Part shown: positions 1 to 36,700 of the stretch, one piece after another
Position numbering within the stretch: position 1 is the first letter of the stretch
Layout of the letters: each line of letters starts with the position of its first letter
NCBI RefSeq assembly: GCF_002571385.2
Contig: NW_019218106.1
Location: forward strand, 10,972-74,971
Direction of reading: 5' to 3'
DNA from: Stylophora pistillata
Taxonomy: Eukaryota
DNA length: 64,000 nt
Program-made: the position numbers and the translations under genes
The notes under the pieces: generated by a model
Databases searched by the model: none
Seen by the model: only the letters and a program-made list of their open reading frames with translations
Told to the model about the DNA's origin: nothing

Positions 1-451
1 AATAACTAAAATCAACCAATCAAATTGCTCTATTGCCGGTCCAATATTCTCTAAGTATTGGACCGGGCACTGTCCCGAATGGTCCCGAATGATACCGTAC
101 TTGTGTCCCTTTGAACTTCAGTCGTATAATAAATCTCTTATTAACCAAGCTTGCTCGGGGCCGTACTGGGAGAATATCGGCCCGAGGTCTTGACAGTACG
201 GACCGAGCGTAGCGAGGTCCGTACAAAAAAGACCGAGGGCCGATATTCTCCCAGTACGGCCCCGAGCAAGCTTGGTTAATAAGAGATTTATTATACGACT
301 GAAGTTCAAAGGGACACAAGTACGGTATCATTCGGGACCATTCGGGACAGTGCCCGGTCCAATACTTAGAGAATATTGGACCGGCAATAGAGCAATTTGA
401 TTGGTTGATTTTAGTTATTAGCCCTCTGACTGCCCGAGTCGTGTAATAATA
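1..451. mobile_element. Long palindromic (fold-back) non-autonomous element, left end outside window
   Basis: Bases 1-182 are the reverse complement of about 238-419, with an apex loop at 205-215. The right end reads ...cccgagtcgtgtaataat. A second, one-armed copy lies at 34535-34850. Confidence 0.85.
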
Positions 452-964
452 GTGAAAATTGATTTATAGTTAGCTATACATTTTTCAGCAACTACTTAAA
501 TTTCCCTTTATCCCTTTTTGCTTTTTCTTTATTGGAAGTAATGAACACAAATCTTTTTCAACGCTTTCATTTCTTAGCGGAAACGCTCGAATAAGCCTCT
601 CAGGGATTTTATTAGGTCTAAACGAACGAGAAGGGAGCTCATCAAAAGCATTTGAATGCGCACCAAAATGCGAGTGAATGTTTTGCTTTTGAACTTTCGT
701 TTATTATCAATGATTATTACATCGCTCGCAGCGCCCGTGGGCGAGACGAAACGAATCTTGTGTTCTGATTGGCTACCCGAGCGAGCAAGATGGGCCCATC
801 TTGCCCGCTCGGGATTACCCGCATTGATCCCGCGCATGAAAAAAATAGAATTACAACTACGTTCGTAATTCTTAAATAAATAAATAAATAAATAAATAAG
901 TACGTAAATTGAAGCTCCCCCATACGGGCTTTTCAGCCACAATGTAAACTAATTAAGTGCTTAA

Positions 965-1872
965 AGTGCCACTATGATCAAAATTTCGCATTGCTTTTTC
1001 TTTCCACTTCTGGAAACTAGAAGTAAGAAACACTTACCATGCCAAGTTTAATCGCAAAATTCGCACGGGAAGTATGATTATTTCAACTTTGTTTTTCGGT
1101 TTTGGTCGCCCGCCATTACTCATTTCAAAAATGGCCGAGTGTGGCGAAAAGAGTTCGCACTAGGAGGAGCCTTTCGGAAGTGACGTCATATGCGCACCTC
1201 GACAAACCAACTTGGCTAATCTTTGTATGCCATTTCTGAGAAGTGAGAGGTATTTGCAAAGCATAATTTGCGAGCAGAATGCCTCCAAGGTGTTGTGTCG
1301 TGCAAGATTGCGACAGGGTGGCCGACAAACAGTTAGGAATATCTGTTCATACCTCTCCTGGTACAGGAACCGAGCGTGCCATGTGGAAAAGATTCGTCAG
1401 CCAGCATAGAAAGTATTTTAAGCCCAATGGGACATTTGGTATTTGCTCACTTCACTTTACCGACGACTGCTTCACTCGTTCGGTACATATAAAAAGGACA
1501 GAGAGACGACTAAAGCCGTTACTTCGTTAAAATATTCTTCGCCTTCACTTTCAGATGAACTGGAAGAAGAATTCGAGGAAGAATACATCTTATGAAACGC
1601 CTAGAATTTCCACTGTGGAATCTCTCACAACACACGAAGCACGATGCGAAAGTGCGCATATGACGTCACAGGCCAACTCATGCGTAAAACCGCTCGGTTG
1701 CGAGCTGAGTAATGGCGGACGGGTTTTTCGTGAATTTCGGCCAGCTATATCAAGGCGTATTTCGCTTCCATCGACCTAAAAACTATCGCATAGTACAATT
1801 CTAGCCATAGTAACTTGATTGGCGCTAAAAAATGTCAAAAGCAGAGACAAAAAGTTTCGTCGTAGTGGCACT
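965..1872 (+). mobile_element. Kolobok-like DNA transposon, internally deleted, retaining a THAP domain
   Basis: TTAA target duplication at 961-964 and 1873-1876. TIR AGTGCCACTA(T/C)GA with RR...YY termini. Subterminal inverted motifs include GTGACGTCATATGCGCAC at about 1180-1197 and 1652-1669. TTAA TSD, RR termini and THAP together fit Kolobok better than piggyBac. Confidence 0.75.
1279..1530 (+). pseudogene. THAP (C2CH) zinc-finger ORF, truncated N-terminus of a transposon protein
   Basis: MPPRCCVVQDC...W..F...ICSLHFTDDCF...RLKP matches the THAP signature. The ORF stops just after the domain. Confidence 0.8.
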
Positions 1873-2307
1873 TTAAAAATCCCCACTGGCAGCAGGCGGC
1901 AGACCAGTGGGCTATTTACAGAGCGCAGCTGAAGACTTGAACCAGGGGCAACCGAGAACAAATCCAGTGAGTGGCAGGATGGAGGACTTGACCCCGTGAC
2001 ACCGGATTACAAGTCCAGCACCCTAACCACTCGGCGATGGAAACGCAAAAGGCGGCATAAGATAATCAAAACAAAGAAAACATAAACGACTCTCGTGAGT
2101 TTGATGTGCTACATGCACAGTTGGCGTTCTTTCCCGACTCTCGAAGTAAACAAGTCATTCTTAATTCTTAATAAAAAAAAAATTTTTTTCAATATAATAA
2201 ATCTTTTATTAACCAAGCGTGAGGTCGACGGCTGATTATTAGCCTCGTTATTTTTTTCGCATTTTTATGGACCATGACTTCGTCTCGGTTCATAAAAATG
2301 CAAACAA

Positions 2308-2340
<33 letters not shown>

Positions 2341-2899
2341 ACACTTGGTTAATAACGCATATTTTAATAGAAATTACACTTAATATAGCATGCATTTGTC
2401 TGATTGAAAACCTACAATATCTAAAACGGAAACTCACACAGGCTTTCAATTACGGATCCAAACGAAAAACATTCTAGCTATTTCTGGGAAGGGAAGGGTT
2501 TGTTAAGAACAGGGGGAGGGGGAGGGGGAGCTTACTTGAGATTGGAGCTTAGTAAAAGAAAGTAGAGGCCTGTTTGAGCGCTTACATCATATAATACTGA
2601 CAAACTAATCCAAAATTTATTTCACAACGCTTCGATATTTCTCGTTGAGAATTAATTATACTTTACAAAGCTTCCAACACACATTCTGCGTCTCCCTCGC
2701 ATATTTGCATGTTCACGTGTTCACTAAAATACTGGGAAGTTCGACCATATCTCACCAGTTCTGCGGGAACTGGGTTGGTCCTCTGTTAAACATCAGCTGT
2801 TACTACGCGACGTCACACAGCTGCACAAACTAGTGAGTGGACTTGCGCCCTCCTACCCAAATAGCTACATAAGCCAAAGGACAGGAATCCACCGTTGTA

Positions 2900-3147
2900 A
2901 TACCAGATTCAGGGAAAACTTAGACGTTCCTTGAGTTTCTGATATCGTTACTGGAAATTTTACGTTTTCATTTTTAAGATCACATAAAGCTTCTGCCACG
3001 TCTTGCGCACTCTCAAGAAATGTCGACCTTCCAATGTTCATTACGAGTCCAAGTACTACCATGTGCAAGATGGTAGTAGAGTCCACTCGCCAGAACCTTG
3101 TCCGCTGGAATAGGATTGCGGAAATTTGTAGGTTGTCTCCATAGTCG
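2900..3147 (-). pseudogene. PIF/Harbinger (HARBI1-like) transposase fragment, frameshifted
   Basis: Minus-strand translation RQPTNFRNPIPADKVLASGLY... followed by IGRSTFLESAQDVAEAL...VKFP, typical of the Harbinger transposase HTH region. Confidence 0.6.
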
Positions 3148-3395
3148 ATGCTGCAAGAGTTAACTAGTCACCAAACCAAACCAAACCTTGGCTCTTATTG
3201 GAGTACAGATCCTGCTCTTAGCTCTCCATTTTTCTCTAGCGTAATGCCCAGGGATCGATTCCTCCAGATTCTACGATACTTACATTTTGCAGACAACACC
3301 CAGGCACCCATCGCTGACTCAGCTGATTACAATAATATGTACAAAATTCAGCCCTTCTTGAACTTGGTAATACCTAAGTTTCAGGAAGTGTATAA
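3148..3395 (+). pseudogene. piggyBac (PGBD4-like) transposase fragment
   Basis: YWSTDP..SPFFSSVMPRDRFLQILRYLHFADN...YKIQPFL is the conserved piggyBac block. It is cut at TAA (3393-3395) by a Harbinger end. Confidence 0.8.
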
Positions 3396-3593
3396 GGCCC
3401 CGTCCACACTAATCCGTTTTCAAACGAAAAAGATTTGCGTCCACACTTATCGTTTTCGTATCATTTTCGCCCGTCCACACTACAACGCCGTATCCGTTTT
3501 GAAAACGCTTTTATACCCTCAGTGCGCATGCTCAAATGAACTCGACGCATGCGCATTTCAATATATCGGTCCGCGAAATTGGCGCCATTCTTG

Positions 3594-3659
3594 ATTCTTT
3601 GTTGTTGAGTGTTGTTGTGGTTTAGAATTCTTTGTTGTTGAGTGTTGTTGTGGTTTAGA
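3594..3659. repeat. Perfect 33-bp tandem duplication
   Basis: attctttgttgttgagtgttgttgtggtttaga occurs twice in tandem. Confidence 0.95.
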
Positions 3660-3685
3660 ATTCTTTGATATTTTCCTTCTAAACG

Positions 3686-4384
3686 ATGCCAAGAACAGCT
3701 GGAAAGCAACCAACACCTAAAACAGACTGTTTCACATGGACTGCTGATGAAGTACAGCTACTTCTGAAAGGCACAAACAAATACACAGTGCAGAAAAGCA
3801 CCCAGAGTGTAGACTGGGAGTCAGTCCAGTCGAAGTATGGCGACATCTTGGATATGTTTCAAGCAGAGTATCCTAACAGCGAAAATGCGGCTGCTTTAGG
3901 CAAGGAATACCCTCATAAACCGGAGGATATAACTAAGGCTACACTATCCACGAAGTTAAAGGCAGTTCGCAAGAAGTTTAGACAAAAAGTCGACTCGGGA
4001 AGGAAGAGTGGACATGGCCACGTGGTCTTGCTGTATTACGAGCTCTGTCAAGAAATATGGGGTGGCTCGCCAGCGACAAATAGGATAAGTTCCGGCTTAG
4101 AACCAAGTACATTAATTGAGGATATTGATGTAGATGGTGCTACTGATACCCCTGCAACGGTAGACGTAAATGATGATGAAAGCGAAAGCCTAGAAGATGA
4201 AGAGGGACCACAAAATGATGCAACTCCGACCAGTAGTACCATCAAGCATTGGAGGGAGCTACTTCATTCGAAGCTGAAGTGCTACAAACAAATGAGAAAA
4301 GTGGAGGACAAAACTCTTTGTAGATATCCAAATGCTGAGTATTGCCGAGGAAGAACTCGAAATAAAGAAGAAACTGATCACTAG
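3686..4384 (+). pseudogene. Harbinger-associated Myb/SANT-like (trihelix) DNA-binding protein, degenerate at the 3' end
   Basis: FTWTADEVQLLL...DWESVQSKY...KLKAVRKKFRQ..DSGRKSGHG...YELCQEIWGGSPAT followed by an acidic tail. A probable frameshift lies near the C-terminus. Confidence 0.75.
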
Positions 4385-4752
4385 AATGGAAGAAGTAGAT
4401 AAAGAAGTAGATAAACAACCAATGGGCAAGCACTTAGGGCTGCTACTCTTGTATGCCACCAATAAATATCACTGTTGCAGGTGTTGAAAAATTATTGAAC
4501 AAGTTAAATCCTTACTCCTCTCTGCCTTTATTACAGGCCGCTATTAAATGATCCGAGAAAGCTCCTGTTACAAAATGGTTACCCTCAAGGTGTTATCGCG
4601 TTCAACACTAATGATGTGTTGAGAGCTTTTACCACTCGCTTAGACGCCTTAACGAAAGGTAGCAAGACTCTGTAATTTTCTTCTTTATTCTCTTCTGAAG
4701 AGCAACTACAGCAACGCTCTATGCATCTAATAATAATAATCACCATCATGCT

Positions 4753-5136
4753 TTATAACATAACCAAAGTAAAGCGCGCGCTCTGATTGGTCAATTTAGC
4801 GTTCCCCATTTGCCCATGGGTGTACGCTGCTGACGTGAGCAAATGCAAAGACTATTTTTCCGCGCGCGCTTGTTTTTTCTGGTCGCGTAAGATTTGTTAA
4901 ATAAACGGGAACTCTTTAGCTACAATGTATCAATGTTATGTTATAAAACAAATGGTAAACACCACAGCGTACACTATTGAGTTATGGATGCACTTGGGAG
5001 GTTTGCTAAGCACTCAAGAAGCTAGAGTCGCTCTCGGCTACCGCCTCGAGCGACTCTTACGCTTCCTTCGCGCTTAGCAACCTCCCGCGTGCATCCATAA
5101 CTCAATAGTGTACGCTGTGGTCTTTACCATTTGTTA
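4753..5136 (+). mobile_element. Non-autonomous element with a terminal hairpin of about 190 bp (4947-5136)
   Basis: Left end ttataacataacc...ctctgattggtc. The arm aacaaatggtaaa...ttatggatgcac pairs with gtgcatccataa...tttaccatttgtt. Apex at 5034-5047. Confidence 0.75.
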
Positions 5137-5569
5137 ACTAGCGTGGGGAACCGACACTTTAAGTTGGAAAATCGTAGACTTGTTTTGGTTAGCTGACCGT
5201 GAGATTTTCCGCAGTATATTCGCTGTTTTGCAAAGGGGGAAATTGGGTGGCTCGCTCCGAAGTACTTGGCGAGCACCAAAGAACCAATTAAACGCCAATG
5301 ATCGAGCTGCATACGAAAATCACGCGTTCAAAACAGGATCTCAGTGTGGGTAAAACTCAAGGTCAGTTTTACCAACCCAAACATGACCAGCTAGCAAACT
5401 AATTATTCTCAACCATAACAAGCGATTAAAATGTCTAGCATGGTAAGAACTTAGCCAAGTTCACGCACACACTAAAAATAAAAGATCAAAACTACAAATT
5501 TATCAAAATAACACGAAGGCGTAAAAAGGCGAGACTCAATAAAACAAAAGGTAAACCTAAAAATACTCG

Positions 5570-6330
5570 AAATAGCAACCCTTTAAAATACTCTACAACA
5601 GATGTATCGAACAAAAATAAGAACAAACCAAATAACCCTGTTCAAGCTACAGTCCCCGAAAAAGATACCTTAGTTGTGTTACCCTACTGAGGTCTTCACA
5701 GTAACCAAGTCACGAAACGTCTGAAATCCTGCGTTTACATTGAATTTCCACTCTTTCGTCAATCTCAAGATCATATTCCAAAACACACGCCGCATCAAAT
5801 TCTTTTTTCCTTACAAATATAGCTTGAACCGGATCTCAAAGGTCCAAGGTTACCTATAAAGCTGGTTGCTGGAATTGTGATGAGTTCACATTTGCGAAAC
5901 AAAACGAAGACTCCATGACCGGAAAACAGAACATTTTAAGGCCCTAGCTAAAAGTGACCATTCATCAGCCATTGCTGGTCATGTGAAGACCACTGGTCAC
6001 AACATTAAATGCATTTAATTTGACATTTTAGCGTCGGGAAAAACTGACTTTCCCTGTAAAATTAAAGGGACTTTGTTCATTCAAGAGCTAAAGCCTTCCC
6101 TTAATGTCAATGTTAGTAGTGAGAAGTTTTTGTTATTTTAGCCAGTACTTCTCATTAGTCTAGACATGTACTGTTGTAGATTCTTTTTGTCTCAGTCTAG
6201 GTTCCAGACCTCTTACATTCACTATATAGAGTTTTCAACATTTCTAACGGTTCACTTTTGAAAATGTACGTTGACTAGCATACGAAACGTCAAGTTCTAT
6301 ATAAAATACATTGGAATACAATGTTTATCA
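5570..6330 (+). mobile_element. Degenerate Penelope-like retroelement 3' part (GIY-YIG endonuclease)
   Basis: Piecewise translation with stops and frameshifts: LVVLPY..., KIIFQNTRRIK.FFPYK, YKAGCWNC, KTKRRLHDRKTEHFKAL...SAIAGHVKTTGHNI, KIK.TLFIQELKPSLN. It ends with a hammerhead-like remnant (...GAAACGTC at about 6284-6291). Confidence 0.8.
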
Positions 6331-7208
6331 CCGCTGTTTGTCTTATTTTCTTAATCAAGCTACGATGGCCTAAGAACGAGAGTTTATATGGTCCAGAAAA
6401 TCTACAGCCCCGAATCCTATGGTAATTAAGTTCCCAGATTGCTCCAGTCCTTTGCAATACATTCAAGGTTTCCCTTAGAACAGCTACCACGGTGGGCACA
6501 CGGGCGCTGAAAAGATGCAGCGGTCTGCGTCGCAAAAAAATGGTGTCGATTTTCTTTTCCCGAGGGGGTCCCCGTGACGGCCAGTTTTGGTTTTGAAATT
6601 CATGCTAATTTATGTAAATTACCACAGTTCCTAACGCCCGAAGAGCAAAGATTTTTCCACATGAAAGCAGCCAAGATGCTAACCTATCATATGATACCAA
6701 ACTTCCCGTGGTTCATTCCCAAGTTCGTTAGAAATAGATGTTATCGTGAATGAGTCCATCTTTGTCGTGAGGAAAATGAGTGTTTAAAGTTGTCTTTTGC
6801 TTCAAAAGGCTGTCTGCCAAAGCGCTTTGAGATTTCTTCCTCTTGCACATACAGTGTGTTGTCCAGTTTCCGGCCGGTATCAGTTTCCGGCCAAAAAAAG
6901 TTAACTCGGTCATTTTCGATGGTATTTTAACTCTTCTTCCACCGAAGCGATCCGTCAGAAAAACGAACATCTCCGCTATCAACTGATGGTTTTGGCGGGC
7001 TTTTTGGTCTGGAAACGAGCGAACAAGAAGAATTTTTGTTCAGGTGAGTAAAATCTTACCGGCTAATTTTTGGTCTTATCACTGCACAGCGAAGCTACCG
7101 TACGTAAATAAATAACTTGCTTAATAGGAAATAGTTCACGGAGCTTGATAATTTTTTGAAAGAATTTACATTGAAGGTGGAAGTAATTTAGGGACCTGTC
7201 ATCATAAA

Positions 7209-7360
7209 CAGGGGGTGACGACTCAACAAAAGCTGTTTCGGGACAAAGCCAAAATTGTTCCGGGAATCTGGAGATTTCTCCGGAAATCGGGGCACTTGGT
7301 AAATTTTACCGGGAAACACGCGATAATTCCGGGACATTGAGAAAAATATCGGGACATCGA
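7209..7360 (+). mobile_element. Possible hAT-like transposon end with subterminal CGGGACA/CGGGAA repeats
   Basis: Starts CAGGGGG and has about 7 CGGGACA-like motifs in 130 bp. The partner end was not found. Confidence 0.35.
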
Positions 7361-7900
7361 AGGAAGTTTTATTTCACGTTTTCATTTACGTTAAACTCGT
7401 TAAGTTAGGCATGAAATCTTCTGTAAGTGAAAACATTCAAACAGCGAGTGTAGCGTTGCGGCTTGTGGTTTACACAAGGGACTTTACGAATCAGAATGCG
7501 ACTCAGTTTGAAAACACTGAAACCGAGAAGGGCCCGGGGCGAGAACGCCGTCACGAGCGCGGGAAAAACAAAGTAGGGAGCTTAAGCACCAGGCATTCAT
7601 GATTCACGGAGGCGAAACGGATGTGAGATTTCGAATATTTTCCTACTGCGCATGTCAAAAGGTCGTCGTGATTTGTCACGGCGGCCGCCAAGGCGCTTGT
7701 GGCCTCCGTGCTGATTTTCCACGACCGCGAATGGTAGATTGTACGTAGCAAAAAAGCACAACGTTGTCAACACCAAAAAGAGCTTCTGAAATTGGATTCG
7801 CACGATAAGATATATTTATTATCCTTAGAAGAAAATAAATATCTTTGATCGTGCAACACAAATATGAACAAGATCAAGTGTGGATGACTTGAAATGTACT

Positions 7901-7945
7901 ATTTAACAATTATGCCACGAGCGCGCGTTGGATATAAGATGATAG

Positions 7946-7977
<32 letters not shown>
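7901..7977. mobile_element. Hairpin element truncated by an assembly gap
   Basis: atttaacaattat...gccaac[tcggcgctacgcgcctc]gttggc followed by Ns. Confidence 0.6.
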
Positions 7978-9189
7978 NNNNNNNNNNNTTTTTCAGATTG
8001 TCAACGAACCGCGCAAAATTTGACCTAATCGCAAAGTCCTTTGTCTACATTATCATTTCAATCAAGCCAAGTAAATACGAGAAATTAACAAATACCAAGG
8101 TAGCGCAATGACGATACATGTCTAAGGAAACTGTCAAAGTAACCAGCGCTTAAAACAGCTAGGTAGAAATCCCAGCACGAGCACGTCACCTCCTTTAGCC
8201 GTTGCATGGGAATGGAAATAAGGTAGAAATTTTATCAGCACGTGCGGCAGTTTTCGTTTTCTTCTATATTCAGCTTTCTATTTTTCACTCTCCAATGGAA
8301 GAAAGAAGAACTTCATTTTTACAACTAAACTACTTGAATGATTGGTCCGCTTGAAAAGAAGCCTTGATCAATTGTTCCACCGCCGCGCAATTAGATGCAT
8401 TCTGGTAAGATTCAATATTTGAAAAAGTCACATCTTTTACGGCAAACTAGCCAATCACGGACACTTTCAGGGAATCCCCCCCTTGCAATTGTACAAAAGA
8501 CAGATACAACAGAAGATAAACATTCAAATGGCGCAGTGATTTAGGACACAGACGCCTTACGGTTGTAAATTTGCATACGAACCATGATAGAATATTTAAT
8601 CACCCTAGTCTAAGCTAAACAAAACCTGTTAAGACAAGTGGCGTACATCTTCCCTACCAACGTAATATTGAATTATGAAACAAGAGAGATCTTGATATGT
8701 TCTTCTAACCGATGTTCACCCAGAAAAGGAATAATTTTACTTACGGCGTAAAAATTAAGTTCTTAGTGGTTAATTTGTGTGTTTTAGTATTGAAAATCTA
8801 TTTTATAGGCGCCGCGCGATTGGTATTTAATTCCGGCCACGCAAGATTTATGCTGTTTCCTTGACTTTTTAGTCTTTGCTCCCGACGGTCTGCCCGCTGA
8901 ACAAGGAAAATTAACAAAAATTTAAACGTTGCGTTTGATATCACCTGTTTGCAAATGAAATGTAGGACGTGCCCTAAATTAGATTGACAAACAGAAGGAT
9001 TCAGTTGCATTTTTTCCTCTTTTCGCGATATAAAACGTTCAGCAATATTATTCAAATGTCCACTGTGGAAGGACCCCATTATTGAGTGTCGGTCGGTTGT
9101 GCCTTCGGTAATATATAATATCGACCTGATTGCGATGTGATGTGCTCAGTAAAGTGGAACATTTCCTCAGCAACTAAATAAGGGGGTAA

Positions 9190-9389
9190 TTTTCAAAAGA
9201 AATTGTGGTGCCGCGTTGGTGGGGTGTATTACAAGATCAAATGATTTTATCAACTTACTTGATACTATCAACTGGGAAATTGGCCGCCGTATAGAGTTCT
9301 TAAAGCTCTGACGAAGGGCTAACGCTCAAAACTTCAGCTTTAAGGTGGCTAATTTACATTATCAACTCATTTGATAAAACCAAATTATT
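9190..9389. mobile_element. Short Penelope-type non-autonomous repeat (inverted plus forward pieces) with a degenerate minimal hammerhead
   Basis: CTGACGAAGGGCTAACGCTC-AAAACTTC at 9308-9335. Same family as 55073-55210; about 9190-9265 resembles the reverse complement of that copy's 3' half. Confidence 0.65.
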
Positions 9390-10143
9390 AAGATAGGTAA
9401 GATAGGTAGAGCAGTAAACCAGCTAGTCAAAAATGTCAAGTTGTAAGTTTGTGTAGAGGCGTGCAATAAAATTTGATTGGGTGAAAACAAAGATCATCAG
9501 CTGATGTTCTCTGGACGAAGCATCTTTATATTTACTTTTAGAGCTACGATAGATCGCCCATCAAGCTGTTTTTGAGCCGAGACATCTAAAACCGGCTACG
9601 CTTTTAAAACTGAAATTTAATTGTCTCTTGTGAATAAAACTCAATTTCACAAGAGAGGATTTGCACTTGGGCCTTCGTTTGAAAGCGAGGATTTCTAGAA
9701 TCGAAATGTGCCAACGTATTGTCTCTGAAAATGAGCTGGTAAGTATAGTGATCAATGTTCTTATGGCCCTGAGGGAGAAATCGCTAGAGAGATGGGAAAC
9801 AGTTATTAAATTCTCAATCAAAGAAATAGTTTTCTTTCGCCATCCGTGATATAATGATTTTTTAAAACTGCGAATCCGCTGAAGACCTTTTCCTGACTGG
9901 TTGTGCGGATTGAGACCAAAAAGAATTCAGACAAAGCGGGGTTTGAATAAAATGATCGAGTTATTTCCTTCTAGCTAAACACTGTGGTCAATGGTAATAT
10001 GGCGTCCAATATAGATATATCAACGGTACAATAACGGTAACGAAGCTAATATTATCCGGCTCAGCCTTCCATGTCACAAGTGATTTACGGTAGCTTTTAC
10101 TATTGGAAACGAATATATGTAGAATATCTGAAACAAAGCAATG

Positions 10144-10179
<36 letters not shown>

Positions 10180-10477
10180 GAATTAGCCCACAAGATTTTG
10201 CAACCCGAGGAGATACATTCGAAGGTTTGAAGGGGCGTCACATATACTCTGAAAATGGGGGCGCTTTTCTTGCTTGAGGGGAATTTTTACATTGTTTCAG
10301 CTTCAACTTGCCACTATCCAATCTGACAACATAGAGACCAAGGGAATCCCCTTTTAAGTACGTACAGGAAGGGGCGGGCAGATTCATTGACGCACGGTTT
10401 TGTCGCAATTAGAGCGGTCATGCGTGTCGTAAATATGACACTCACCAACTGTTGTGTAAACAGATTAAGGCAGATAA

Positions 10478-10776
10478 ACCCTTTTACGATTTACATTCTC
10501 CACACTTTTCTCTATATATTTCCTTCGGTACTGACATGGAGAATTTGTTCCGTTTGACAATCGCGAGCCTCTTAAATTAGTGATCATTTTTTTTATTGTT
10601 TATTGTCGTGATCTACACGGTCGATTCAAGGAAGATGCTGTAGCTGTAGGGCAACCTCGTTCCCAGGGCCTTGCCACACCCCTGCCCCACCCCCAACTAA
10701 GGGAAAAGGCCCTGGGAACGAGGTTAGCTATAGGGGGAAATTAGAAGCCAGTCACTCTCTGGGGTTCTAATGTTAA
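10478..10776 (+). mobile_element. TTAA-ended MITE family, multi-copy in the window
   Basis: Shared core ggagaatttg..acaatc..gagc..ctt....gatcattt...ggagaaattagatgc..gtcactct..ggggt...gttaa. Other copies: 32052-32191 (+), 49419-49600 (-), 53733-53794 (+) and 54490-54905 (-). More diverged relatives lie at about 21060-21270, 25670-25900 and 26380-26490. Confidence 0.75.
10652..10726. mobile_element. 75-bp MITE nested in the TTAA-MITE
   Basis: TIR pair AACCTCGTTCCCAGGGCC / GGCCCTGGGAACGAGGTT. Confidence 0.85.
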
Positions 10777-11729
10777 ATCTCTTCAAAACGGGATGTGGTA
10801 TACATTCAATTTCAGATGATTAGCACAGTGGAATGTTTGATTTCTATAGAAATCACACACTGTTTCCACATTGTTTCTCTCTCTATTCTGAAATGTTTAT
10901 TAACAATTTGGGGGACCGAAAAACTTCCATTGACTTCTTATCACGTAATGTCGGTTGTCGCTTCGATACTGGATCGCTATCAACTGTAATTTGTGAAAAT
11001 CAGGTGTGGCCATCAGTTCGTGAGTGTGTATAGGTAGCATTCAGGCCTGAGTAACATTTATGTGTTGTCTTGATGAAATTAAAGGTTTTACTTATTGTAT
11101 TGTCCAGAATTTGTAACGGGGGGGGGTCGGGAGGGGGGATGGGTGTCAGACGAATCATATCCCTGGGCATGGATGAACTTTCTAAGATGATGCCACCATA
11201 AAGCATAAAATAGTCTGTTTTCTGTTGCATCCGACGACGTCAGAGATTTCTTTGAGACAAGGGTTGTTCGTTCAGACTCCCTCCTCCCTACCCCCTACCC
11301 ACCCCACCCCACCCATCACTCTCAGGGTTTCTCTGTGTTATCATTCAACCCCATTGTCAATATTAACTTAGGAAGCGACAGCCACCCTGGTAGTGTTCAC
11401 GATAGCATTTTTCTCCAATTTTGCTTATAGCTCGTTGGGTGAACGGTAAAAAAGAAATTCATGGTTCGCAGTTTAACTGAAAAGGAAGATTATATGTCAC
11501 CTGATGGCGTAGATTCCTTTGGTGACAGGCGGGTATAGGGGGAGGGGTGTTCAAGAGACTTTAGACCCTCAGTCGGGATAAACTTTTGATGATAATTTCA
11601 TGCGCTCTCGGTACTCGAAGGAAAGCGACAACAAAGAATCTCTAATACACTTGGTAGACAATAAAGATTAAAGTCCCCTGCCATTTCCAGTGTTTCCTTC
11701 TGTTATCACTCATACCTATAATGACCTTA

Positions 11730-11952
11730 GGGGCCGACCATTTACTTTTTGAGGGGGGGGGGTGGGTGATTTCTGGTCATCAAGAATTTTTCTTTTCTAG
11801 CAATCTGCTGGGCAGGATATTTTTTTCGTTCTAAATGCTCTTTTTTTCTGTTACATTTGGGCTGCATGCAATTTTTTTCTTCCAACAAGCGCTCGCAGGA
11901 ATTTTTTTTTCAAAATCACCCACCCCACCTCAAAAGTTAAATGGTCGGCCTC
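11730..11952. mobile_element. Harbinger/Tourist-like MITE
   Basis: TTA duplicated on both sides (11727-29 and 11953-55). The TIR GGGGCCGACCATTTA.CTTTTGAGG...GGTGGGTGATT is mirrored at the right end. Confidence 0.85.
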
Positions 11953-13044
11953 TTAACTACGTCAGTATCAGCTTAGAGTGAGACTTACATCTGGGTGGTC
12001 TTTGACGAAATCTATTTTCCTACTTTGCTCGAAGCTGATGGGGTGAACGGAAAAAATAAATTGATATGGTTCGTTATAGGTTAAATTCCAGTTAACGGTG
12101 TTAAATTTCGAGTCTCGTCTGCGTTTTAGTAAGTTTAAATAGCTGGTTAGACCGCCGGAAATTTGCTTGTTATTTTTCCTTCAAACTGTGGCAAGATTGT
12201 AAGTAGAGAGAAGATTGGCACGAGACAAGAGTGTGTTAAAGTGCGGTCTCGACCCAGCCCCTTTCGATACAGAAATCAATTACGCGTTTGCTTTTTCTCC
12301 ACGTTTGTTGCGTAGGATCGTAAGAGAAAGAGGAGACTAAAAGAAGTATAGTAGTTAGTATTCCTGGGCTAAGTTTGTAGATTTTTGTGGGAATTACGAG
12401 CGGCAGAACTGGGAAATGAGCAGGGCAGGCGTGAGAGGAATGGTACAGAGAATATTGAAAGGGTCATTTTAAGAAAAATGAATATTACTTAAAGCAGATT
12501 ACAATATCGATTTTACCACGATGGTCTAATCTGTTCCTGGACTGCGAGCTGTTAATAAAAATAGTTGTATCTTTGTCACGAGAAAACCAGCAATTCTGCA
12601 TGAATTACAATGAGGAAAACGTGTTATACGCCAATTATTGTATAACCCACGCTTAGGTCTACAGATAGATAATTGGGGTTGTCGTACGTATGAAGTTAAT
12701 GGTTATATTATCGGTTGTTTAAAATGACGTATTTCCTGAGGGGTATTCCCCGGATTGCAATTTTGCGATTTGACGCGAATTTTTTTTTTTTCTCTCGAGA
12801 TTACGGGAGCGGCAGTTGTTTCTGAAAATTTATTTCTTCTCATGTAGCACTGAAAAACGACCCAGCTTTATCTTGCTTTGAAATCATCACCGTAACCCAC
12901 TGAAATTATGTTCGGTCAAAAATAAACCGCGGATTCCCTGATTTGTTAGTTTTTATGAGACTGCTACGTCTTGTGAATGAGTTTCACTGCTCTCTGTCAA
13001 GGAGTCTTTTTGTCTAAATGAAATAAGTCAATTTTCCGATCGAT

Positions 13045-13262
13045 TGTTTAGTCGGCTGGTCTGTCAGTCAGTGGGCCGTTCTGCCGGGTCATTCAATCAC
13101 AAGACAACAAGTAGGTCATTCATTCATTTATTTATTCATTCATTCACTCAGTCAGTCAATTACTCTATTAAATGGTAGGCCAGTTAAGCAGTCACTTTTT
13201 CAGTCGGTCGGTCAGTCCGTCAATCGTGTCATCCAATCGGTCATTTGTTAGTTGGTAAGTCG
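13045..13262. repeat. Degenerate tetranucleotide array (TCAG/TCAT/TCGG)n
   Basis: Runs such as gtcagtcagt, tcattcattcatt and cagtcggtcggtcagtc. Confidence 0.7.
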
Positions 13263-14859
13263 ATATTTCAAGTAATCGCTCATCAAACCATGGCGGGTTA
13301 CTAGAGAAACCGTACGACCACTTTTCATAACGCTTGAAAATTATTTTGCATCAGGCTCAGATGCTGCCCTCCAGTACGTAAATAATCGTTGTATTTTGTG
13401 GGGCGTAGTCCGCTAAGGGAGTTTTGAAAAGGGAGTTTTGAAATCCTTGAGTTTGTTCCTCCTTTGGCAATAAATTATTCCAGTCCAACTAAGCAATATT
13501 CGCTACCCCTTCCCTTCCTCAAGGCTTTTCAACGGATCATCAGCTGTAATATTTGTTTATTAGTATTTCGAGGCAGCTTTATATAAATATGGGAACAATC
13601 TATAGGTTTGACGTAATATTTTCTTGCTGCCCTGTGCACCATATTAAGAGTCAATGCATTAAAACGGAGGCTTTCTTCACCTTAATTTCCCACTTTCTCC
13701 ATTCTGCAAATCCAAACTTAACGTAAGTCCCTAGACCTTAAAAAAATCTTCAAACGAAAAATAAAGGAAATAATCATGGCACAATTATTAATAAGTGCTT
13801 TAATATTTTAACAGCACTTTTTACCATTGTGACTTAGGTAATTAGTTCTTTAGACACGCATTTTAATGGTTGCGTCAAGAACAATAATGAAGGATGTACA
13901 ATTCTAAAAAAAGATCATACAGGTTTACATAAATCGTTTTTAAAGTTTGATAACATGAAACGTTTCCTGACGGAAAGTGAAAATATTGCATTATCGCCAT
14001 GCTTCTGTGGAAATTGACTTAAATGTCAACTGATATTTTCTTCCTTGTTTATATCAATGTCCGATCATTTAGCTATTGCTTCCTTCCGCTGCTATGTGAG
14101 ACGGTCTTAATGCGCGTTACTCACTTTAACGGAAAGAGTCAAAGCACGTTTTTGGTCACGGTTCACGGAAGTCACGAAATATATCATGGCGGTCTCGTAA
14201 TAGATCCCATTTAAAGATAACAACACGCGCAGGGAGCAGATCCTTGTCACCGGAAGGTTTTTGTTGAATTAAGCAAACGTTTTTAGCTCATATCAAGAAG
14301 CTGATTACCATCATTATTTCCCCTTCAATTTAAGAATCGATTTTTATTCTTATTGATGATTTTTTGACATTTGGAAATTTTTGTTTTCAATATTGTAACC
14401 CGAACGCGATTTTACTGAGTTGTTTTCGAAGTTCTTCTTAACATTAATCTCTTGAAGGTCTATTGTATTTATTGGCTCTTAACCACAGTATTACTCAAAA
14501 TTTTGCTCTGCAGTCTAATTGCGCAATAAAGAATTGTTATCCGACTAAAAAACGACCCAACTGTGTTATACATGGATACAAAATTAAGATAAATGATAAG
14601 AGTCATAATCCATTGGATTTCTAGGTAAACCTTGCAACGCATAAAAAGCCGTTTGATGTTTGTAAATACCCGTGGATTAAATTTTCGCTCTTTCAGTTCG
14701 TCATTTTTCATATTTTCGTTTAACACAAAGGTTGTTCATTAGCAGTTTAAATTATTAATAACTTCCCTTATTTAAAACACCCTCTTGTTTCAAGATCGTT
14801 CGGTTTCGTGACAAACAGGCGCTATTTGGAACGCCTGGCAAACTTCGTGGCGCGATAAA

Positions 14860-15030
14860 AATTCAATCAGCTGACGAAAATTCTTCCACTTTGCCGCCGC
14901 GTCACTTACCACTAGCCAATCAGCGTTCGCCAATGGAGGAGAAGCGGGGTGATTTGATTGGCGTGGCTAGTTTATGGGGGGTCGTGTTGTTCGCGCAAGG
15001 CTATTACATATCAAGCATGCATGGCGGCAT
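14860..15030 (+). promoter_or_regulatory. Probable CpG-rich, TATA-less promoter of KMT2C/D
   Basis: CCAAT boxes (agccaatcag at about 14913, gccaatg at about 14929, tgattggc at about 14955) and a YY1/TISU-like CATGGCGGC at 15020. CpG is common here and depleted in the gene body. The region lies about 350 bp upstream of the ATG. Confidence 0.6.
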
Positions 15031-21300: not shown

Positions 21301-21744
21301 ACAATTTTTCAGCTACATTTTGTTACATATTGTTTGAGTGTGGAATATTCTCTCTTCTTGCTCTACTTTTTTTGGGGTTTTATTGAGGGCTGGGCATGGG
21401 CAAATTGACCGTTTGTGAAGACGGTTTTGCCCACCTGGTTTGACAATCTGGAGGAAAGGTTATCATTCTTATAAAGAAGTTCAGTTCAAAAAGTTTTGCC
21501 CGCCTGTGAAAAACCATTTGCCCTCCTGCTGAAAACATTAATGAAACCCCTGCTTTCTCCTTCAAATGCATTTCTTGATGAACATCCTGGATTAATTTAC
21601 ACGAGTTGTGTTGTTATTTTTCTGATCATTACAGGAGATGTCACCTTACTCTGTGCCTCTGGATGGGCAGTCATTGTATGATAATTTGACTCCGGATGAC
21701 TTTGGAGTTGTAAAACGACCAACAGTGGACCCAGATGAAGAACT
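15368..21744 (+). CDS. KMT2C: KMT2C/D exons 1-5: N-terminus with AT-hook ([13 protein letters not shown]...)
   Basis: gccATGtcag|gtgagt, followed by four small exons with canonical splice sites that join in frame to exon 6. Confidence 0.7.
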
Positions 21745-24700
21745 GTAAGCACTGACTTTCCTTTTTAACTGGTTTTGTTACCCTTTTAAGTAGCACTTAC
21801 ATTTAGCGAGTAATGAAAGAGGAAAAAAAAGCAAAACACAAAAATATCTTTTTATTACTAATTTGTTCATTTGCTGTTGTAAAACAAGGGGTGGAATAAT
21901 CAATATTTTACACTCCATCTCCTTTATATTTTTCTTGTATTTACAATTTACATTTCACTAGAATACCTGGCTTGCTTTGAAAGAAACTTTGAACAGAAAC
22001 GGGTTTCAGAAAGGGCCTGGGCACCAGGCAAATTGACCAGTTGTGAGGAGGATTTTGCCCACCAAGTTTGACAATCTGGAGGAAAGTTTATCTTATAAAG
22101 AAGTGCATCTCAAAACATTTCGCCTACCTGTGAAAACCAGTTGCTGAAAACATTAATGAAACTCCTGCAGAAAGTAGCTAGCAGTACATAGGAAGTGTTT
22201 ATGTACACTGTAAAAATAGCTGCATGTACAGTCAATAAAAGGTGCTCTATTATCCGACAGGATATTTTCCTACTCTAATTTGAAGTTCCTGTCAGGATTT
22301 TAGTCAGTGCATTATTATTTACACACCTGATTCTTTAACAGCAAAGCTGAGGTTTTTGAATTTCCTCATGGGTGTTCATATTCTTTTAATGAAAATGCTT
22401 GGGTGGAGTGAGCCTGATGATGTTTGTTTGTCCAGCTCGTTGCTTAAACATTTATGTTTTGAAAGACTTGGATGCCTTATACAAACTTGATTTGTGTGGA
22501 GGTGCAAGTTTTTCAGGGAAGCCTCTTTTCTCTTGTGGTGTAAACTTTTCCAAGGCAACAATTTGCACTGTAAGCAACTAAAGTTAAGCTTGCAGTACTT
22601 GGTCAGTGATGTTATGACCATGTGGGTGTCATAGGATAAAAACGATTTAAGTCTAAATCAATTTATATATTTTCTATATTTTTTTTATGTAGGGAAATCA
22701 TCACCATCATCTTAAAACCAGAAATCTAACTTTAAAAAGAGAAAGATTAAGATCAATATTATGAGTGACAAAACTCTTGGCACACTCCACCACTTTCAAA
22801 TTTTTCCTTTTGTTTGGTAGCTGGCATTTATATCCCCCTTCATTCCCATTTTAATGTTGCCAGCTGTCAACAAAATGATCGATAATTTCTAGCAGTGTTG
22901 TTTTGGGCTAAAAGGGGGACTTTCAAGTAAGTTATTAGAGATGAATTAGAAGATTCTTGAGTGGACAGCTGTCAACCACCTACTAGGGGAGGCATGTTAA
23001 GTGCTTTTGCCACTCATTTTAGTTTGAGATCATTTTGACTGAAATTTTATTTTAACTTAGGCTACACAGCTTTTAGACATAGTTGGAATGAATTTAGGGT
23101 CAAAATGGTTGGAAGGTTCTTTGATCGTTTTACTCCTAATATCTGACTCACAATTGTCCACTCCAGCTTCTATTTGTAACACTGACAGTCTTATCTCTCC
23201 AACTCTATTTTTCAACATTTTCATTTGTACAGGGCTAAAAACAAAACATGTTCATTCTGCAATTGTGGTGTGGAGAAACGCATGTTTCATGGCAAACTCC
23301 AGAGATATGCACCCACTCCAGGATTCAACCCTGTCAAAAAGCTCCAAAACAGACACAGACAGAACAGTGGCTGTGATCCTTTCAGAGACCGGTCATACTT
23401 AGATGCTTGTGACACAGGACAATTTGCCGAAGATCAACCAGAACCTCCACCTGTAGTAACTCGCCGTGGGCCTGGCAGACCACCTGGACGTGGACGACGG
23501 AAGGGAATTGTGGTTGTAGGGTTGCCATTAAGAACTGGTACCAATGACTTGACAATTGACAAGACTACATATGGGACTGTGAAGGAGAAAGAGTTGAGTG
23601 ATGTGTTTGAAGAAGATGGTTACACCTGGGCCCATCACTGCTGTGCTGCATGGTCTGAAGGGGTCAGCCAGACAGATTCCTATGATTTAATCAATGTTGA
23701 CAAGGCAGTTGTAAAAGCTATGTCTGAGGTATGTTGTTGAAAATTTTAAATTTCTTTGAGAACAAATCTTCTAAAATTATCTAGAGCTGGTCATAAAAAC
23801 AAATTTCAATGTAGGCAGCAGCTTTTGACAATCATTGGGCCAATCTTTTTTGTTTCTCTTCTTTGTTAAGAGGTTTTTGATTTGAATAAGTATTTAATTT
23901 GTATCTGGGATAAATGGGGTATTTCCGTGAAAACACATCTTCTGTTTAATTTTTTACCACTGAACTATGTTTTTAATTCAGTTCTGTGATCATTTTCCCT
24001 TTTCAGCGATGTGATCATTGCAATCGGTTTGGTGCAAGTGTCGTTTGTCAAATGCCACGCTGTGGCAAGACCTATCACTATCCTTGTGCAGCAAGTAGTG
24101 GTTCTTTTCAGGTTTGTCCAGATGAAGTACATGTCTGCTGACATTTTCCTCAGAAATTCAATCTTCTCTTTTACTCATTCAGGACTCGACACTAACATTT
24201 CAACTTACCAGCCTATTGGCTAGTGACATCTTAGATGTTACAACAGTTTCAGTTTGTTTACTAGCCAAACTGGCTAGTGGAAATCGAAAAACGTGAGCCA
24301 AAACTGAATTTCTACCAGTCTGTGGCTAGTTGGCTACCGTTAGTGTCGAGCCCTGCTCATTATCATTAAGTGATTAACTGTATTATGAGAATTAAAAGCT
24401 TCTGAATTGTTTTGGAAAGGCAACGAACTTAGGCACCTGTCTGGCATCACGCCTTCCAACAAATTTTCCTCTCAGAATTACACTTAGGATAAGATCAAAG
24501 CACAAATCAAGCTGTACTGTTGATTGTCATTCTTTCCCTCTTTATTTGGAACAAACAGACTTAGTCATAGAAGAATTCCCCTGTTGATTATGTTCAAGGC
24601 TTAACTGTTATCCTTTTCAAGAAGTTGGTCACTTTCATGTAAACAGAAAGCTGCCCTGACTCCCCTCTGTGTTCTCGCATTTCTAATTGGTAAACTTTCT

Positions 24701-33700: not shown

Positions 33701-36700
33701 TTTTGATGCCCCTGAGAAAGTTGCATTCTAGCTGACTTGAACATTCTTTGTTTCCTTCCACCAGGTGGCTTCATGGCTCATGTGACGGTCTTGTCAGTGA
33801 AGAAGAATTGGATAGGGCCGCAGAATATGGATATCACTGTTTGTATTGTCGTCCCAAAACCAAGCGTGCACTTGTCGGTGTCAGTGGTATGTCTTGTAGA
33901 ACCTCATCTGCTTCCCAACCTTTCCTCACCTTCTTATCTTCTGCTGGAACTAACACTCTGCATGGTTAGTAATTTTCGTGCTGTGCACCCCTCAAAATGC
34001 CCTCCACAATGCACTAAGCAGAGACAACTGTCGCAAAGGCTTTACAAAAGGAGTGTACCACATTCAGTTTTTCAAGTGAACCCGGGAAGTTGTTCCTTGA
34101 CATTTTGTTGGAGCGTTAGACAACATTAAACTGTTTACTATCTCGAGCAAGAACAGCCAGTTTTTTTTGTTGTGATGTCAGTCAACATTTATCGTAGGAA
34201 AGCATGAAACAGTCCTAATTTTGTTCTCACACATTTACTGCAAAAAGCAAAAACACAAACCTCTGTGTCAACAGAGTCCAGTACTTAATGCATTTGGACA
34301 CCAAAATTTAGCTTTTTGATGACCCAAGTAAGGTAGTTGAACTCAATCTGAACTTGTTTTTTCCCTCTTTGTTTCTTTTAAGTTGCACAAGTCTTGATTT
34401 GAAGGGTGTTGAAGGAAATCTGTTCCTTGTTTATTCTGTTCTATTACTTACACCATCTGGTTCTCTCACTCACTGTGTCTTATTTCCTTTGCTGTTTTGT
34501 GTGGACATCTCTGTAATTAACTACTATTGATATTTATTACACGACTCGGGCAGTCAGAGGGCCAATAACTAAAATCAGCCAATCAAAATGCTCTATTGCT
34601 GATCCAATATTCGCTCAGTATTGGATCGGGCACTGTCCCGAATGGTCCTGAATGATACCGCACTTGCGTCCCTTTGACCTTCAGTCGTATAATAAATCTC
34701 TTATTAACCAAGCTTGCTCGGGGCCATACTGGAAGAATAGTGGCCCTCCGTCTTTTTTGTACGGACCGAGCGCAGCGAGGTCCATACTGTCAAGACCTCG
34801 GGCCGATATTCTCCTAGTACGGCCCTCATGCTTGGTTAATAAGATATATATATTTTTGGCATGTTTGCTAAGGAGGCTATTGTGTGTATCATGCTTTGGT
34901 AGATTATACACATCTTGTACCTAGGAGTTTTGCTGTGTGTGTTTTGTTTTAAAAAAGCAACTGTTTGGAGTTTGAAGGTTTGAAGGCCTTAAGGACTGGA
35001 AGACTCAGAAATGTAGCGCTATTTTCAGTGACATATGTTGAAGCCACTGCAACCTTAATCCTCTTGATGTAGCCTTGTCTTTCAAAGCTGTCAATGTTGG
35101 TTTAGGAAGGAAACCAAACTTGTTCCATTTTTGTGCCATCTCACTTGGAATCACCAAAAAGAAGGGGTTTTATTAGTTGACTAACTTTCAGTTGATATTC
35201 ATGCAGATGTTGTCGTAGAACTGGGGTTTATATCTCTTGTCAGGTCCCCCATCACCAAGGGCTACAGCTTTACACCATTATCGACCTCAGTCTCTAAATG
35301 ATGATCTACAGTCTCAACTCGATGGAAAGCCTTTACATCCCTGTCAGCGTGTCAACAACAACTTGGTTGAACTGAAGCTATCAAACCACTTCAACAAAGT
35401 GCAGATAACAGCTCCCTTTTCGGGTAACACTATTGAACTGACAGAGTCTGGTCTGCGGCACATGAATAGGCTAAAGTTACCACCAAGCAGTAGGAGGCGA
35501 GTGGTCAAGAGCAAGCTGAAGCCTAAAAAGTTTAGCACGCCTACCGGTCCAGTCAAGAGGAACAGCTTTGCAGGCCACTGGCAAGACAAAGATGTCATGT
35601 TCAATAGGGCTGTCGTGGAAGATGGTAGCATGGATATGATGGATGATATGGACAGCATTAAACACAAGTCACCCCTGGCTCCATCCAGAGTCAGTAGATC
35701 CAGGCAATCTAATGTGGGGCGCCCAGGAGTTGGTGGATTTGTGCTGCATGGTCGTGGCTCAGGAGGGAGGAGATATGCTGGTCGTGGTGCTCGAGCAAAT
35801 ATGAAGAAGAAAGGGCCTGCATTTGCTCCAACAGCACAGGGGCCTTCCAACTTGAATCATTTGGGAAATCAGCTGTCACAGGTTATTATTACACTTTTTG
35901 AAACAAAATGCAATTATGAATCTTGAAATTTCTTTCTTTTGAATTTGTATCTTGCCTTTTAGATAAGTTGTGGGTAGCTTTTTTTCTTCTGGTCCGTTTG
36001 ATTATTTATTTTATCTTCTGTTGTGTTCGTTATCACAATCCAACATCAACAGAGGTGTAAATTAAAGTGGTTTGAAAAACGTACAGAGGAAATATTTTAG
36101 CCATAACAGATTTGGGAAATTTGAAAAGTACAACGGATATAAACTCACGTTGTGAAGGAGGTACATTGTAATTGACTTTGATTGTTTGATACTTACAAAT
36201 ACTTTGTAACAGAGTGTATTTAATAACATAACAGAGCAGTAGACCAAAATGTGGTCACTCTAAACAAACCGTAATGGTGTTTTTTCCTTTTTTTCTTTCT
36301 TTTTTTTTTTTTGCTGGCATGTGTAGCAAACTTATCCGAGTGGAATAAGTAGTCCTTCCTTTGGTAGCAAACCTTCTCCATTCACTGAGTTGGAGCCTTC
36401 ACTAAATCAAGTAAGCAGTGATTGTTGGGCTGATGCATCTGATGAGAATGCTCTGCAGGAGTCCTATCCTAAGTGGATTCAGGTACAGTCCTATTTTGTT
36501 GTGGCTTTTACGAGTTTTGGGTCATTTTTCATTGAGTGCTGTATATTGGAATTCCGGTACTTATTTGACGCATTGTGGTTGATGTTTCAACGCCTTTTGC
36601 GATATTTTTTTCATTTTAGGAGGCGTTCTTTGGCAAAGACCTTCTAGATACACTCGGTAGAGAGAAACGATCAAAGCACGGTGGCAAGACACCGTCAACC

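Follow-up and report, generated by a model that had tools for sequence, protein, structure and literature searches.

Long hairpins with a shared G·A/GNA apex in the coral Stylophora pistillata as the probable 3' ends of CryptonA-type transposons

The window analysed here is a 64,000-nt stretch of the Stylophora pistillata genome (assembly GCF_002571385.2, contig NW_019218106.1, positions 10,972-74,971, forward strand). A sequence-only reading of this DNA had described five hairpin apex sites with one common architecture, and all five were confirmed in the window letters; they belong to four high-copy families, here called F1, F3, F4 and F5. We consider it probable that these hairpins are the 3'-terminal structure of compact (~2 kb) hexacoral CryptonA-type transposons and of their numerous non-autonomous deletion derivatives, a reading that includes the folding of one DNA strand. 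The non-autonomous derivatives far outnumber the autonomous elements, and the window holds five derivative copies. Sequencing runs of coral metagenomes also contain the window.

The apex was examined at the level of family consensus, starting from more than 1,190 first-look candidates for each of the four families in the 398-Mb assembly. The consensus apexes read C-GA-GC-GCA-GC-GA-G (F1), GA-GAC-GAA-GTC-GA (F3), GA-GGC-GATA-GCC-GA (F4, with the loop GATA where the window copy has GGTA) and GA-GGCGC-GTA-GCGCC-GA (F5). All four fit the pattern C-GA-[G/C stem]-G(N)NA-[stem]-GA-G, and the shared apex proposed from the window copies is accordingly also a property of the families. The F1, F5 and F4 apexes contain the literal mini-hairpin letters GCGNAGC or GCGNNAGC, respectively in the forms GCGCAGC, GCGTAGC and GCGATAGC, and the F3 core is ACGAAGT, in which the C·G closing pair is retained. 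Read from its letters, the apex is a Hirao-type mini-hairpin placed between tandem G·A mismatches. Mini-hairpin DNA of the types d(GCGNAGC) and d(GCGNNAGC) is unusually stable and is bound poorly by single-strand-binding protein (SSB) (Hirao and co-workers; review PMC13037366). In DNA, unusual stability is a property of C(GNA)G caps and of tandem sheared G·A pairs in Y-GA-R context but not of their complements, and mini-hairpins resist both SSB and nucleases (PMC13037366, PMC3201870; partly general knowledge); they are also present at the complementary-strand origins of single-stranded DNA (ssDNA) phages (PMC13037366). The F1, F4 and F5 apexes are exact matches to this class. The class itself is known from oligonucleotide chemistry and from priming sites of ssDNA phages and plasmids, and is not known to have been reported as a conserved building block of any eukaryotic transposon.

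Folding of the four consensus hairpins placed further G·A features below the apex. All three 2x2 loops are GA/GA in F1 and likewise in F3; F4 has two GA/GA loops and one GC/AA loop, and F5 has one GA/GA, one GAG/AGA and one GC/AA loop. The GA/GA loops share the strand of the apex, and every one of them stands in Y-GA-R context. Counted on the apex strand, the ratio of CGAG to CTCG is 6:0 in F1, 4:0 in F3, 2:1 in F4 and 4:0 in F5. The GC/AA loop, in the context C-GC-G / C-AA-G, is common to F4 (window 4947-5135) and F5 (locus L081:752-869) despite their otherwise different stems. An Rfam search found no family at the hairpins.

The families had been taken to be unrelated, which did not survive the alignment of copies together with their flanks: subterminal inverted repeats (subTIRs), hairpin base and layout are common to one superfamily. 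F1, F3 and F4 follow a single design, in which a subTIR is followed by a body, an inverted subTIR, a spacer, the hairpin and a TA-rich end. The subTIRs are 12 nt long (TTAT[T/A]ACA..) and read TTATTACACGAC in F1, TTATTACATC.. in F3 and TTATAACATAAC in F4. The body of non-autonomous copies measures 130-340 nt and carries a CCAAT-type motif; a spacer, 0-5 nt in these alignments and put at 3-9 nt for the lineage as a whole, separates the inverted subTIR from the hairpin, which is 120-190 nt long with arms of 60-95 nt, has a base reading TTAAC.. and is followed by the short TA-rich end, (AT)n in F1. When an element is drawn with its hairpin to the right of its body, TC/TNC/TC is read on the top strand, and the G·A fold lies on the opposite strand. 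Homology between F1 and F3 is clear over the full length of the hairpin, and F4 and F5 share the apex flavour in addition to the GC/AA loop. When the 3' end is joined to the 5' end, the product is an inverted copy of the internal junction of subTIR, spacer and hairpin base, and each junction consists of a pair of half-sites in inverted orientation (..ATAATAA / TTATTAA..) with a short spacer between them. By its letters this layout looks like that of a tyrosine-recombinase core site.

The absence of clear target-site duplications (TSDs), reported from the window, held throughout the copy alignments, which contain no ordinary TSD. Among 23 F4 copies, 22 have T-TAT.. at the 5' boundary and all 23 have the T of N-T-A in the 3' flank, and a short TA-type microhomology at the ends is possible. 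Elements of the Helentron/HLE2 type insert between T and T and leave no TSD. A search for empty sites and TSDs by joined flanks and all-versus-all comparison returned only tandem arrays and haplotigs and no empty site. Head-to-tail arrays with exact end-to-start junctions were seen both for F4, in L071 (385-bp period), and for F5, with a 297-bp period, at G000:C9:312403-313327 and C17:1353256-1353586. A hairpin element of a different kind was found at L043:1345-1501, where a 156-bp insertion in an F3 body carries a ~100-nt hairpin with the apex ..AAACGTTT-TCGTT-TAAACGTTT... G·A features are absent from this insertion, which has a 13-nt duplication (AATAAATCCTTTA) on its two sides and can be used as a naturally occurring negative example.

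The link to a recombinase came from a pattern scan of public metagenomes, which yielded 120 contigs (548 kb in total). Coral host DNA accounts for 114 of them, an origin confirmed by their animal genes, and the remaining six, high-GC bacterial chance hits, were left out. A Pfam search with 107 open reading frames (ORFs) from the metagenome contigs and genome loci identified ORFs with QRICH1, DUF3504 and Phage_integrase matches in three coral contigs, and no Rep/helicase among the 107. About 310-320 nt past the recombinase stop codon, L186 and L106 contain an inverted-subTIR-like sequence, ..CATATAATAA, followed by an F1-like or F3-like hairpin, and L107 contains a partial F3-like hairpin at about the same distance downstream. 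A word search retrieved 260 recombinase homologues in cnidarians; they are multicopy, ~380-405 aa at full length, and the catalytic set R..K..HxxR..H..Y is invariant in the nine proteins compared. Together with nine further loci from corals and a sea anemone, the three metagenome contigs make 12 distinct recombinase loci, and in 10 of the 12 the hairpin lies 205-590 nt past the stop codon. Since the genome contains roughly one motif per 60 kb, a chance hit in a 600-nt window has a probability below 1%. The Crypton-type tyrosine recombinase named as one candidate by the sequence-only reading is therefore physically linked to the hairpins.

Orientation is constant in all 10 hairpin-bearing loci, with TC on the sense strand of the recombinase gene and the G·A fold antisense. 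The linked hairpins include unrelated stems and other inner stems (GGCC-GAA, GGCC-GCA and GCC-GAA), and one of them, L216, belongs to the sea anemone Actinostola; the antisense strand of most of them has three GA/GA loops at equivalent places. No clear hairpin was found in L214, an Actinia gene without an integrase hit, or in L218, where an imperfect motif stands 950 nt away. At L217:1804-1877 a recombinase-linked F1-type hairpin lacks the inner apex module, its outer spacer being joined at GTAC, through either deletion of the palindrome centre or assembly collapse. In L211 (2589 to ~4650) and L215 (2580 to ~4556) perfect 12-nt subTIRs enclose the recombinase gene, and these elements of ~2.0-2.1 kb contain a single QRICH1/DUF3504/Phage_integrase ORF and nothing else. 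Long copies with the same ends and a recombinase gene, for which the earlier reading had suggested a search, were thus obtained for F3 (L211) and for F1-type hairpins (L186, L215) but not for F4 or F5. F3 can be aligned to L211 in its 5' part as well as in its hairpin, and it is therefore a deletion derivative of such an element.

The frequency of the apex motif was determined genome-wide against reversed-pattern controls. The triloop pattern CGAG-N0-3-CGNAG-N0-3-CGAG, which leaves both N segments free to pair or not, gave 4821 matches versus 286 for its control, and the tetraloop form gave 1846 versus 308. The Watson-Crick-closed form CGAG...CTCG gave 641 matches versus 137 and is 7.5 times rarer than the triloop. 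At least 11 different self-complementary inner stems occur among the triloop matches. The first 100 triloop matches listed comprise 66 unmutated F1, F3 or F5 apexes, three F5 apexes with one stem mismatch, 16 further perfectly complementary apexes with eight extra stem types (GTCGC, GGCC, GGC, GCCC, GCGCC, GAGC, GCCGC and GAAGC), about eight that are one mismatch off and about seven that are unstructured, which equals the control rate. Overall, the letters of the inner stem, which the pattern leaves free, pair perfectly in about 85 of these 100. Because of these counts and the composition of the first 100 matches, the mismatch form was taken as the master state and the Watson-Crick forms as minority derivatives of the same families. 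The finder of long hairpins proved too strict for arms with indels and missed F4, and a loop-walking script, which reached at least 50 pairs in 27 of 130 hairpins, was used qualitatively.

Stem covariation was assessed in an alignment of 26 diverse F1/F3-type hairpins. Compensatory double changes were found in 23 of the 41 consensus pairs, and 95.9% of all cells are paired, a value reached by none of 500 shuffles, with slid controls at 43% or less; a two-base deletion was moreover coordinated between both arms. As judged from this alignment, the hairpin is under selection as a structure: its stems vary through compensatory substitutions, and the G(N)NA cap with its C·G closing pair and two to three tandem G·A loops of the form Y-GA-R/Y-GA-R remain constant. 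The covariation and the inner-stem types together bear out the earlier proposal of a fixed, strand-specific, non-canonical fold carried on varying stems.

Strand constancy was evaluated by comparing the apex with the outer parts of each copy. The F1 apex, set against the outer asymmetric spacer, is canonical in 533 exact matches and flipped in 58. Among 100 listed F5 copies, 77 are canonical, seven are fully flipped, 11 have one GA changed to the Watson-Crick TC, and in a few the flip is restricted to either the loop or the flanks. A flipped apex was present in one of 30 sampled F3 copies and in none of the sampled F4 copies. In all, the G·A features lie on one strand, antisense to the recombinase gene, in ~80-90% of copies. 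In older copies from metagenome loci (for example L106, L149 and L187, loop 2), CGAG has often become CAAG and CTCG has become CTTG, a CpG-type decay of the G·A loops that is consistent with germline methylation of the elements.

The shared fold, expected to be stable on one strand only, suggests, without proving, a recombinase that acts on folded single-stranded DNA as in bacterial integrons. In the integron attC site the bottom strand is folded and recombined by IntI, and attP(+) of the CTX phage is handled in a comparable way with XerCD; single-strand recombination has been demonstrated for these systems. By analogy, we tentatively propose that the coral elements are eukaryotic tyrosine-recombinase transposons that recombine at a folded single strand, an attC-like substrate, and, as the same tentative claim, that the choice of strand is written in the code of tandem sheared G·A pairs and GNA cap, kept from reef corals to sea anemones as the stems drifted. 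The G·A strand, antisense to the gene, would fold when single-stranded into a nearly continuous and very stable hairpin, and the complementary strand, with T·C/C·T loops and a TNC cap, would fold less well. This asymmetry would select the strand and bring the paired half-sites to the recombinase, as folded attC does for the integron integrase, and excision and integration would then proceed through the end junction in the TA-rich crossover region. The apex flips and the 'repaired' GA/TC variants may be by-products of the hairpin forming in vivo.

Several observations weigh against the overall reading. The strand rule has exceptions, since the apex is flipped or Watson-Crick-repaired in about 10-20% of copies. 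By nearest-neighbour energies the G·A strand has only a slight advantage of 0-5 kcal/mol, a weak separation that arises because the parameters omit sheared G·A pairs and GNA caps; the extra stability of these features was taken from the literature and not computed. Most of the compensatory changes trace to one deep split between F1-type and F3-type hairpins, and gene conversion between the arms could keep them paired. Moreover, the recombinase link comes from related coral and anemone assemblies and metagenomes rather than from the genome of the window, and F4 and F5 are tied to the recombinase through shared architecture only, without a linked gene.

Four other explanations were weighed against the Crypton reading. 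The nearest in layout is that the elements are non-autonomous rolling-circle transposons of the Helentron/HLE2 type (HINEs), with the hairpin as the 3' stem-loop terminator for a Rep/helicase of the HUH class. Published Helentron/HLE2 elements and HINEs have 12-16 nt inverted repeats and a stem-loop after the right repeat (PMC4067079, PMC11417382, PMC7492417), and the coral copies resemble them in these respects and in their T- or TA-rich boundaries, tandem arrays and associated microsatellites. The genome also encodes RepHel proteins of the HLE2 type, with 42 Helitron_like_N hits and 47 DUF6570 hits adjacent in the same frames. However, a RepHel ORF was not found close to any of the hairpins in the ~830 kb of DNA that carries them; instead, the Crypton-type recombinase genes carry the hairpin in 10 of 12 loci, and the subTIRs of L211 and L215 enclose the recombinase alone. 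The known HLE2 palindromes are short, with stems of 5-10 bp in contrast to the arms of 60-95 nt found here, and they have no described G·A code. This origin is highly improbable, and the HUH nuclease, the other candidate of the sequence-only reading, found no backing, given that this genome has Rep/helicase genes but none adjoins a hairpin in the hairpin-bearing DNA covered. The Helentron/HINE assignment had at first been favoured on architecture and was downgraded when ORF scans gave Crypton recombinases, and no RepHel, beside the hairpins. As an observation in its own right, an HLE2-type Rep/helicase with DUF6570 and Helitron_like_N in one frame is present at G000:C174:48236-49552 (-), and others at C68, C13 and C410; the C174 gene lies in an open frame of 2013 aa without interruption and may represent an active Helentron that has nothing to do with the hairpins.

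The other three explanations concern what the fold does. The hairpin may belong to a Crypton whose recombinase does not read the G·A/GNA features, which would have a role in other processes or simply outlast them. They might nucleate a hairpin from which an excised circle is primed for second-strand synthesis or replicated, break the perfect symmetry and so protect the palindrome from deletion, or be the only mismatches that escape hairpin-templated repair. Perfect palindromes are unstable, the 11% of 'repaired' GA/TC forms and the partial F5 flips show repair or recombination on the folded form, and mini-hairpins are present at phage origins and bind SSB poorly (PMC13037366). We nevertheless regard this as unlikely, as a survivorship filter leaves the origin of TC-to-GA double transversions unexplained, and likewise the constant Y-GA-R context and the matching loop positions in hairpins of corals and a sea anemone whose stems are unrelated. 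Action at the level of RNA, as a 3'-UTR or terminator hairpin of the recombinase mRNA or through small RNAs from an antisense transcript, is very unlikely. The hairpin is close enough to the stop codon that it may be transcribed, and tandem G·A pairs are common in structured RNA, but a sense transcript would contain the weak version with U·C/C·U, the stability of C(GNA)G triloops and GCG(N)NAGC is specific to DNA, Rfam has nothing at the hairpins, and the non-autonomous copies keep the hairpin without the gene. Finally, the motif could have come from one ancestor and persist without function, by inertia, in ordinary long-TIR MITEs. The relatedness of all families through shared termini, and the homology of F1 and F3 along the whole hairpin, speak for common descent; yet the stems have diverged beyond recognition with the motif, the Y-GA-R context and the strand kept, and the variety of self-complementary inner stems, the rarity of the Watson-Crick-closed form and the compensatory substitutions and indel make inertia extremely improbable.

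Within the Crypton reading, the closest known family is CryptonA, as far as the sequences tell, and the coral elements depart from it in their termini and hairpin. They agree with CryptonA in having a single ORF for a recombinase with DUF3504/QRICH1-like and integrase regions and no reverse transcriptase or DDE enzyme, no ordinary TSD and more non-autonomous than autonomous copies, and CryptonA is known from cnidarians. Animal Cryptons reportedly lack every type of terminal repeat (Kojima and Jurka 2011, PMC3212892; Glomhopper 2026, PMC13465315), and CryptonA elements are characterised by the absence of terminal inverted or long direct repeats, with direct repeats of only 4-6 bp. In contrast, the coral elements have exact 12-nt subTIRs, a hairpin of 120-190 nt at the 3' end in which the G·A/GNA code is fixed, and an inverted copy of their joined ends in the interior. 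Neither PMC3212892 nor PMC13465315 mentions a hairpin, palindrome or stem-loop, and full-text literature searches found no paper linking Crypton or Helitron elements with such hairpins, with mini-hairpins or with G·A mismatches.

Two further systems share parts of the design. The attC and CTX sites resemble the coral hairpins in being used by a tyrosine recombinase, in conserving structure over a variable sequence, in marking one strand as substrate by non-Watson-Crick features, and in placing two paired half-site boxes before a variable stem-loop (general knowledge). They differ in being bacterial and in deriving their asymmetry from extrahelical bases rather than from tandem sheared G·A pairs and a GNA cap (general knowledge), and single-strand folding and recombination, demonstrated there, are only proposed for the coral elements, for which no attC/CTX membership is claimed. 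The retroelement DIRS-1, for which ssDNA intermediates are documented, has an essential internal complementary region (ICR) that matches its joined termini (PMC7192593). The coral elements are similar as eukaryotic recombinase elements with an internal segment complementary to the side-by-side ends. DIRS elements, however, are ~5-kb retroelements with RT/RNase H and long inverted LTRs, whereas the coral elements are ~2 kb, encode the recombinase only and have a long hairpin that separates the internal site from the end; membership in DIRS is not claimed.

The five copies in the window represent this design in various states of preservation. The triloop pattern occurs at 204-216 (+), 7954-7972 (-) and 34767-34779 (+) and the tetraloop pattern at 5033-5048 (-), with 0.01 matches expected from shuffles for either. 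The complete F4 copy spans 385 bp at 4753-5137 (+), with the 5' subTIR TTATAACATAAC at 4753-4764, the inverted subTIR at 4935-4946, the hairpin at 4947-5135 (+) and a terminal AA; its apex at 5033-5048 (-) is C-GA-GGC-GGTA-GCC-GA-G, and with the consensus loop GATA the mini-hairpin becomes GCGATAGC. A second F1 copy at 34534-34853 (+), in subTIR-to-hairpin orientation, has the 5' subTIR at 34534-34545, the inverted subTIR at 34684-34695, the hairpin at 34700-34843 and (AT)n at 34844-34853; the apex at 34767-34779 (+), C-GA-GC-GCA-GC-GA-G, is flipped relative to the rest of the copy. The F3 copy is split. Its 5' part, at 714-873 (+), starts with the subTIR TTATTACATC at 714 and contains a CCAAT-type motif and a small palindrome (776-813); ~1.15 kb of nested foreign sequence follows (874 to ~2029), and the 3' part at 2030-2363 (+) contains the inverted subTIR remnant ATATAATAA (2193-2201), the hairpin (2205-2356) and the terminal CGCATAT (2357-2363). 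The F3 apex at 2272-2288 (-) reads GA-GAC-GAA-GTC-AT, and the view that the site at 2274-2286 (-) is a decayed copy proved correct, as the family consensus GA-GAC-GAA-GTC-GA keeps both GA dinucleotides. Within the nested segment 874-2029 there are an (AAAT)n run, two perfect inverted repeats of 18 nt (1180-1197 and 1652-1669) and a tRNA-like stretch near 1900-2030.

The remaining two copies adjoin assembly gaps. The F5 copy at 7900-7977 (+) retains the left arm and apex only, its right arm being lost at the gap 7978-7988. The apex, C-GA-GGCGC-GTA-GCGCC-GA-G at 7954-7972 (-), is complete in its letters just before the gap interrupts the hairpin and is flipped relative to the outer arms, a class of ~7% of copies; the flipped minority thus includes two of the five window apexes (7954-7972 and 34767-34779). 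The letters to the right of 7978-7988 differ from the right arm expected from complete copies such as L081, so the two sides are discontinuous and the gap is under-sized. The first F1 copy, at 1-449, for which no strand is assigned, has a fold-back form with arms 1-204 and 216-419 that are 97% complementary, a hairpin core at ~140-290 and a tail-end subTIR at 438-449 that reads TTATTACACGAC on the minus strand. Its apex at 204-216 (+), C-GA-GC-GTA-GC-GA-G with the mini-hairpin GCGTAGC, matches that of hundreds of other copies. An assembly gap lies directly to its left, and the perfect fold-back form may therefore be an assembly artefact; the copy at 1-420 (locus L001) is either a true inverted duplication of its own body or such an artefact. 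Another gap, 30608-31564, overlaps none of the five sites. Runs of N within or beside copies were also seen in L005, L010, L011, L017, L022 and L024 as well as at window 7978-7988; such gaps recur inside or right beside hairpins or the F1 (TA)n end, and the elements seem to break the assembly.

The window ORFs include no transposase or recombinase, in agreement with the earlier statement that no autonomous partner gene is present in the window. Elsewhere in the window, two adjacent open frames at 39726-44060 and 44153-48493 (+), of 1445 and 1447 aa, have no Pfam match (E <= 0.001) and may represent very large exons or genes, arranged in tandem, that belong to an unassigned family. An Rfam tRNA match of 34.5 bits is located at 54646-54717 (-).

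Animal Cryptons have been described without terminal structure, and for this reason they have been hard to delimit and their mechanism has been hard to study. A cnidarian Crypton lineage now has exact ends, an internal joined-end copy and a conserved hairpin, which makes annotation straightforward, and with it come thousands of non-autonomous derivatives, with ~6,000 apex motifs in one 398-Mb coral genome. On the practical side, the hairpins coincide with assembly gaps in this genome. The elements also provide a large natural and evolutionarily constrained data set for mini-hairpin and tandem G·A motifs, and their mechanism becomes testable with oligonucleotides and a protein of ~390 aa. To our knowledge, recombination of folded ssDNA by tyrosine recombinases has so far been known only from bacterial integrons and CTX-type phages; if the fold is indeed the substrate, this mode of recombination would extend to animals.

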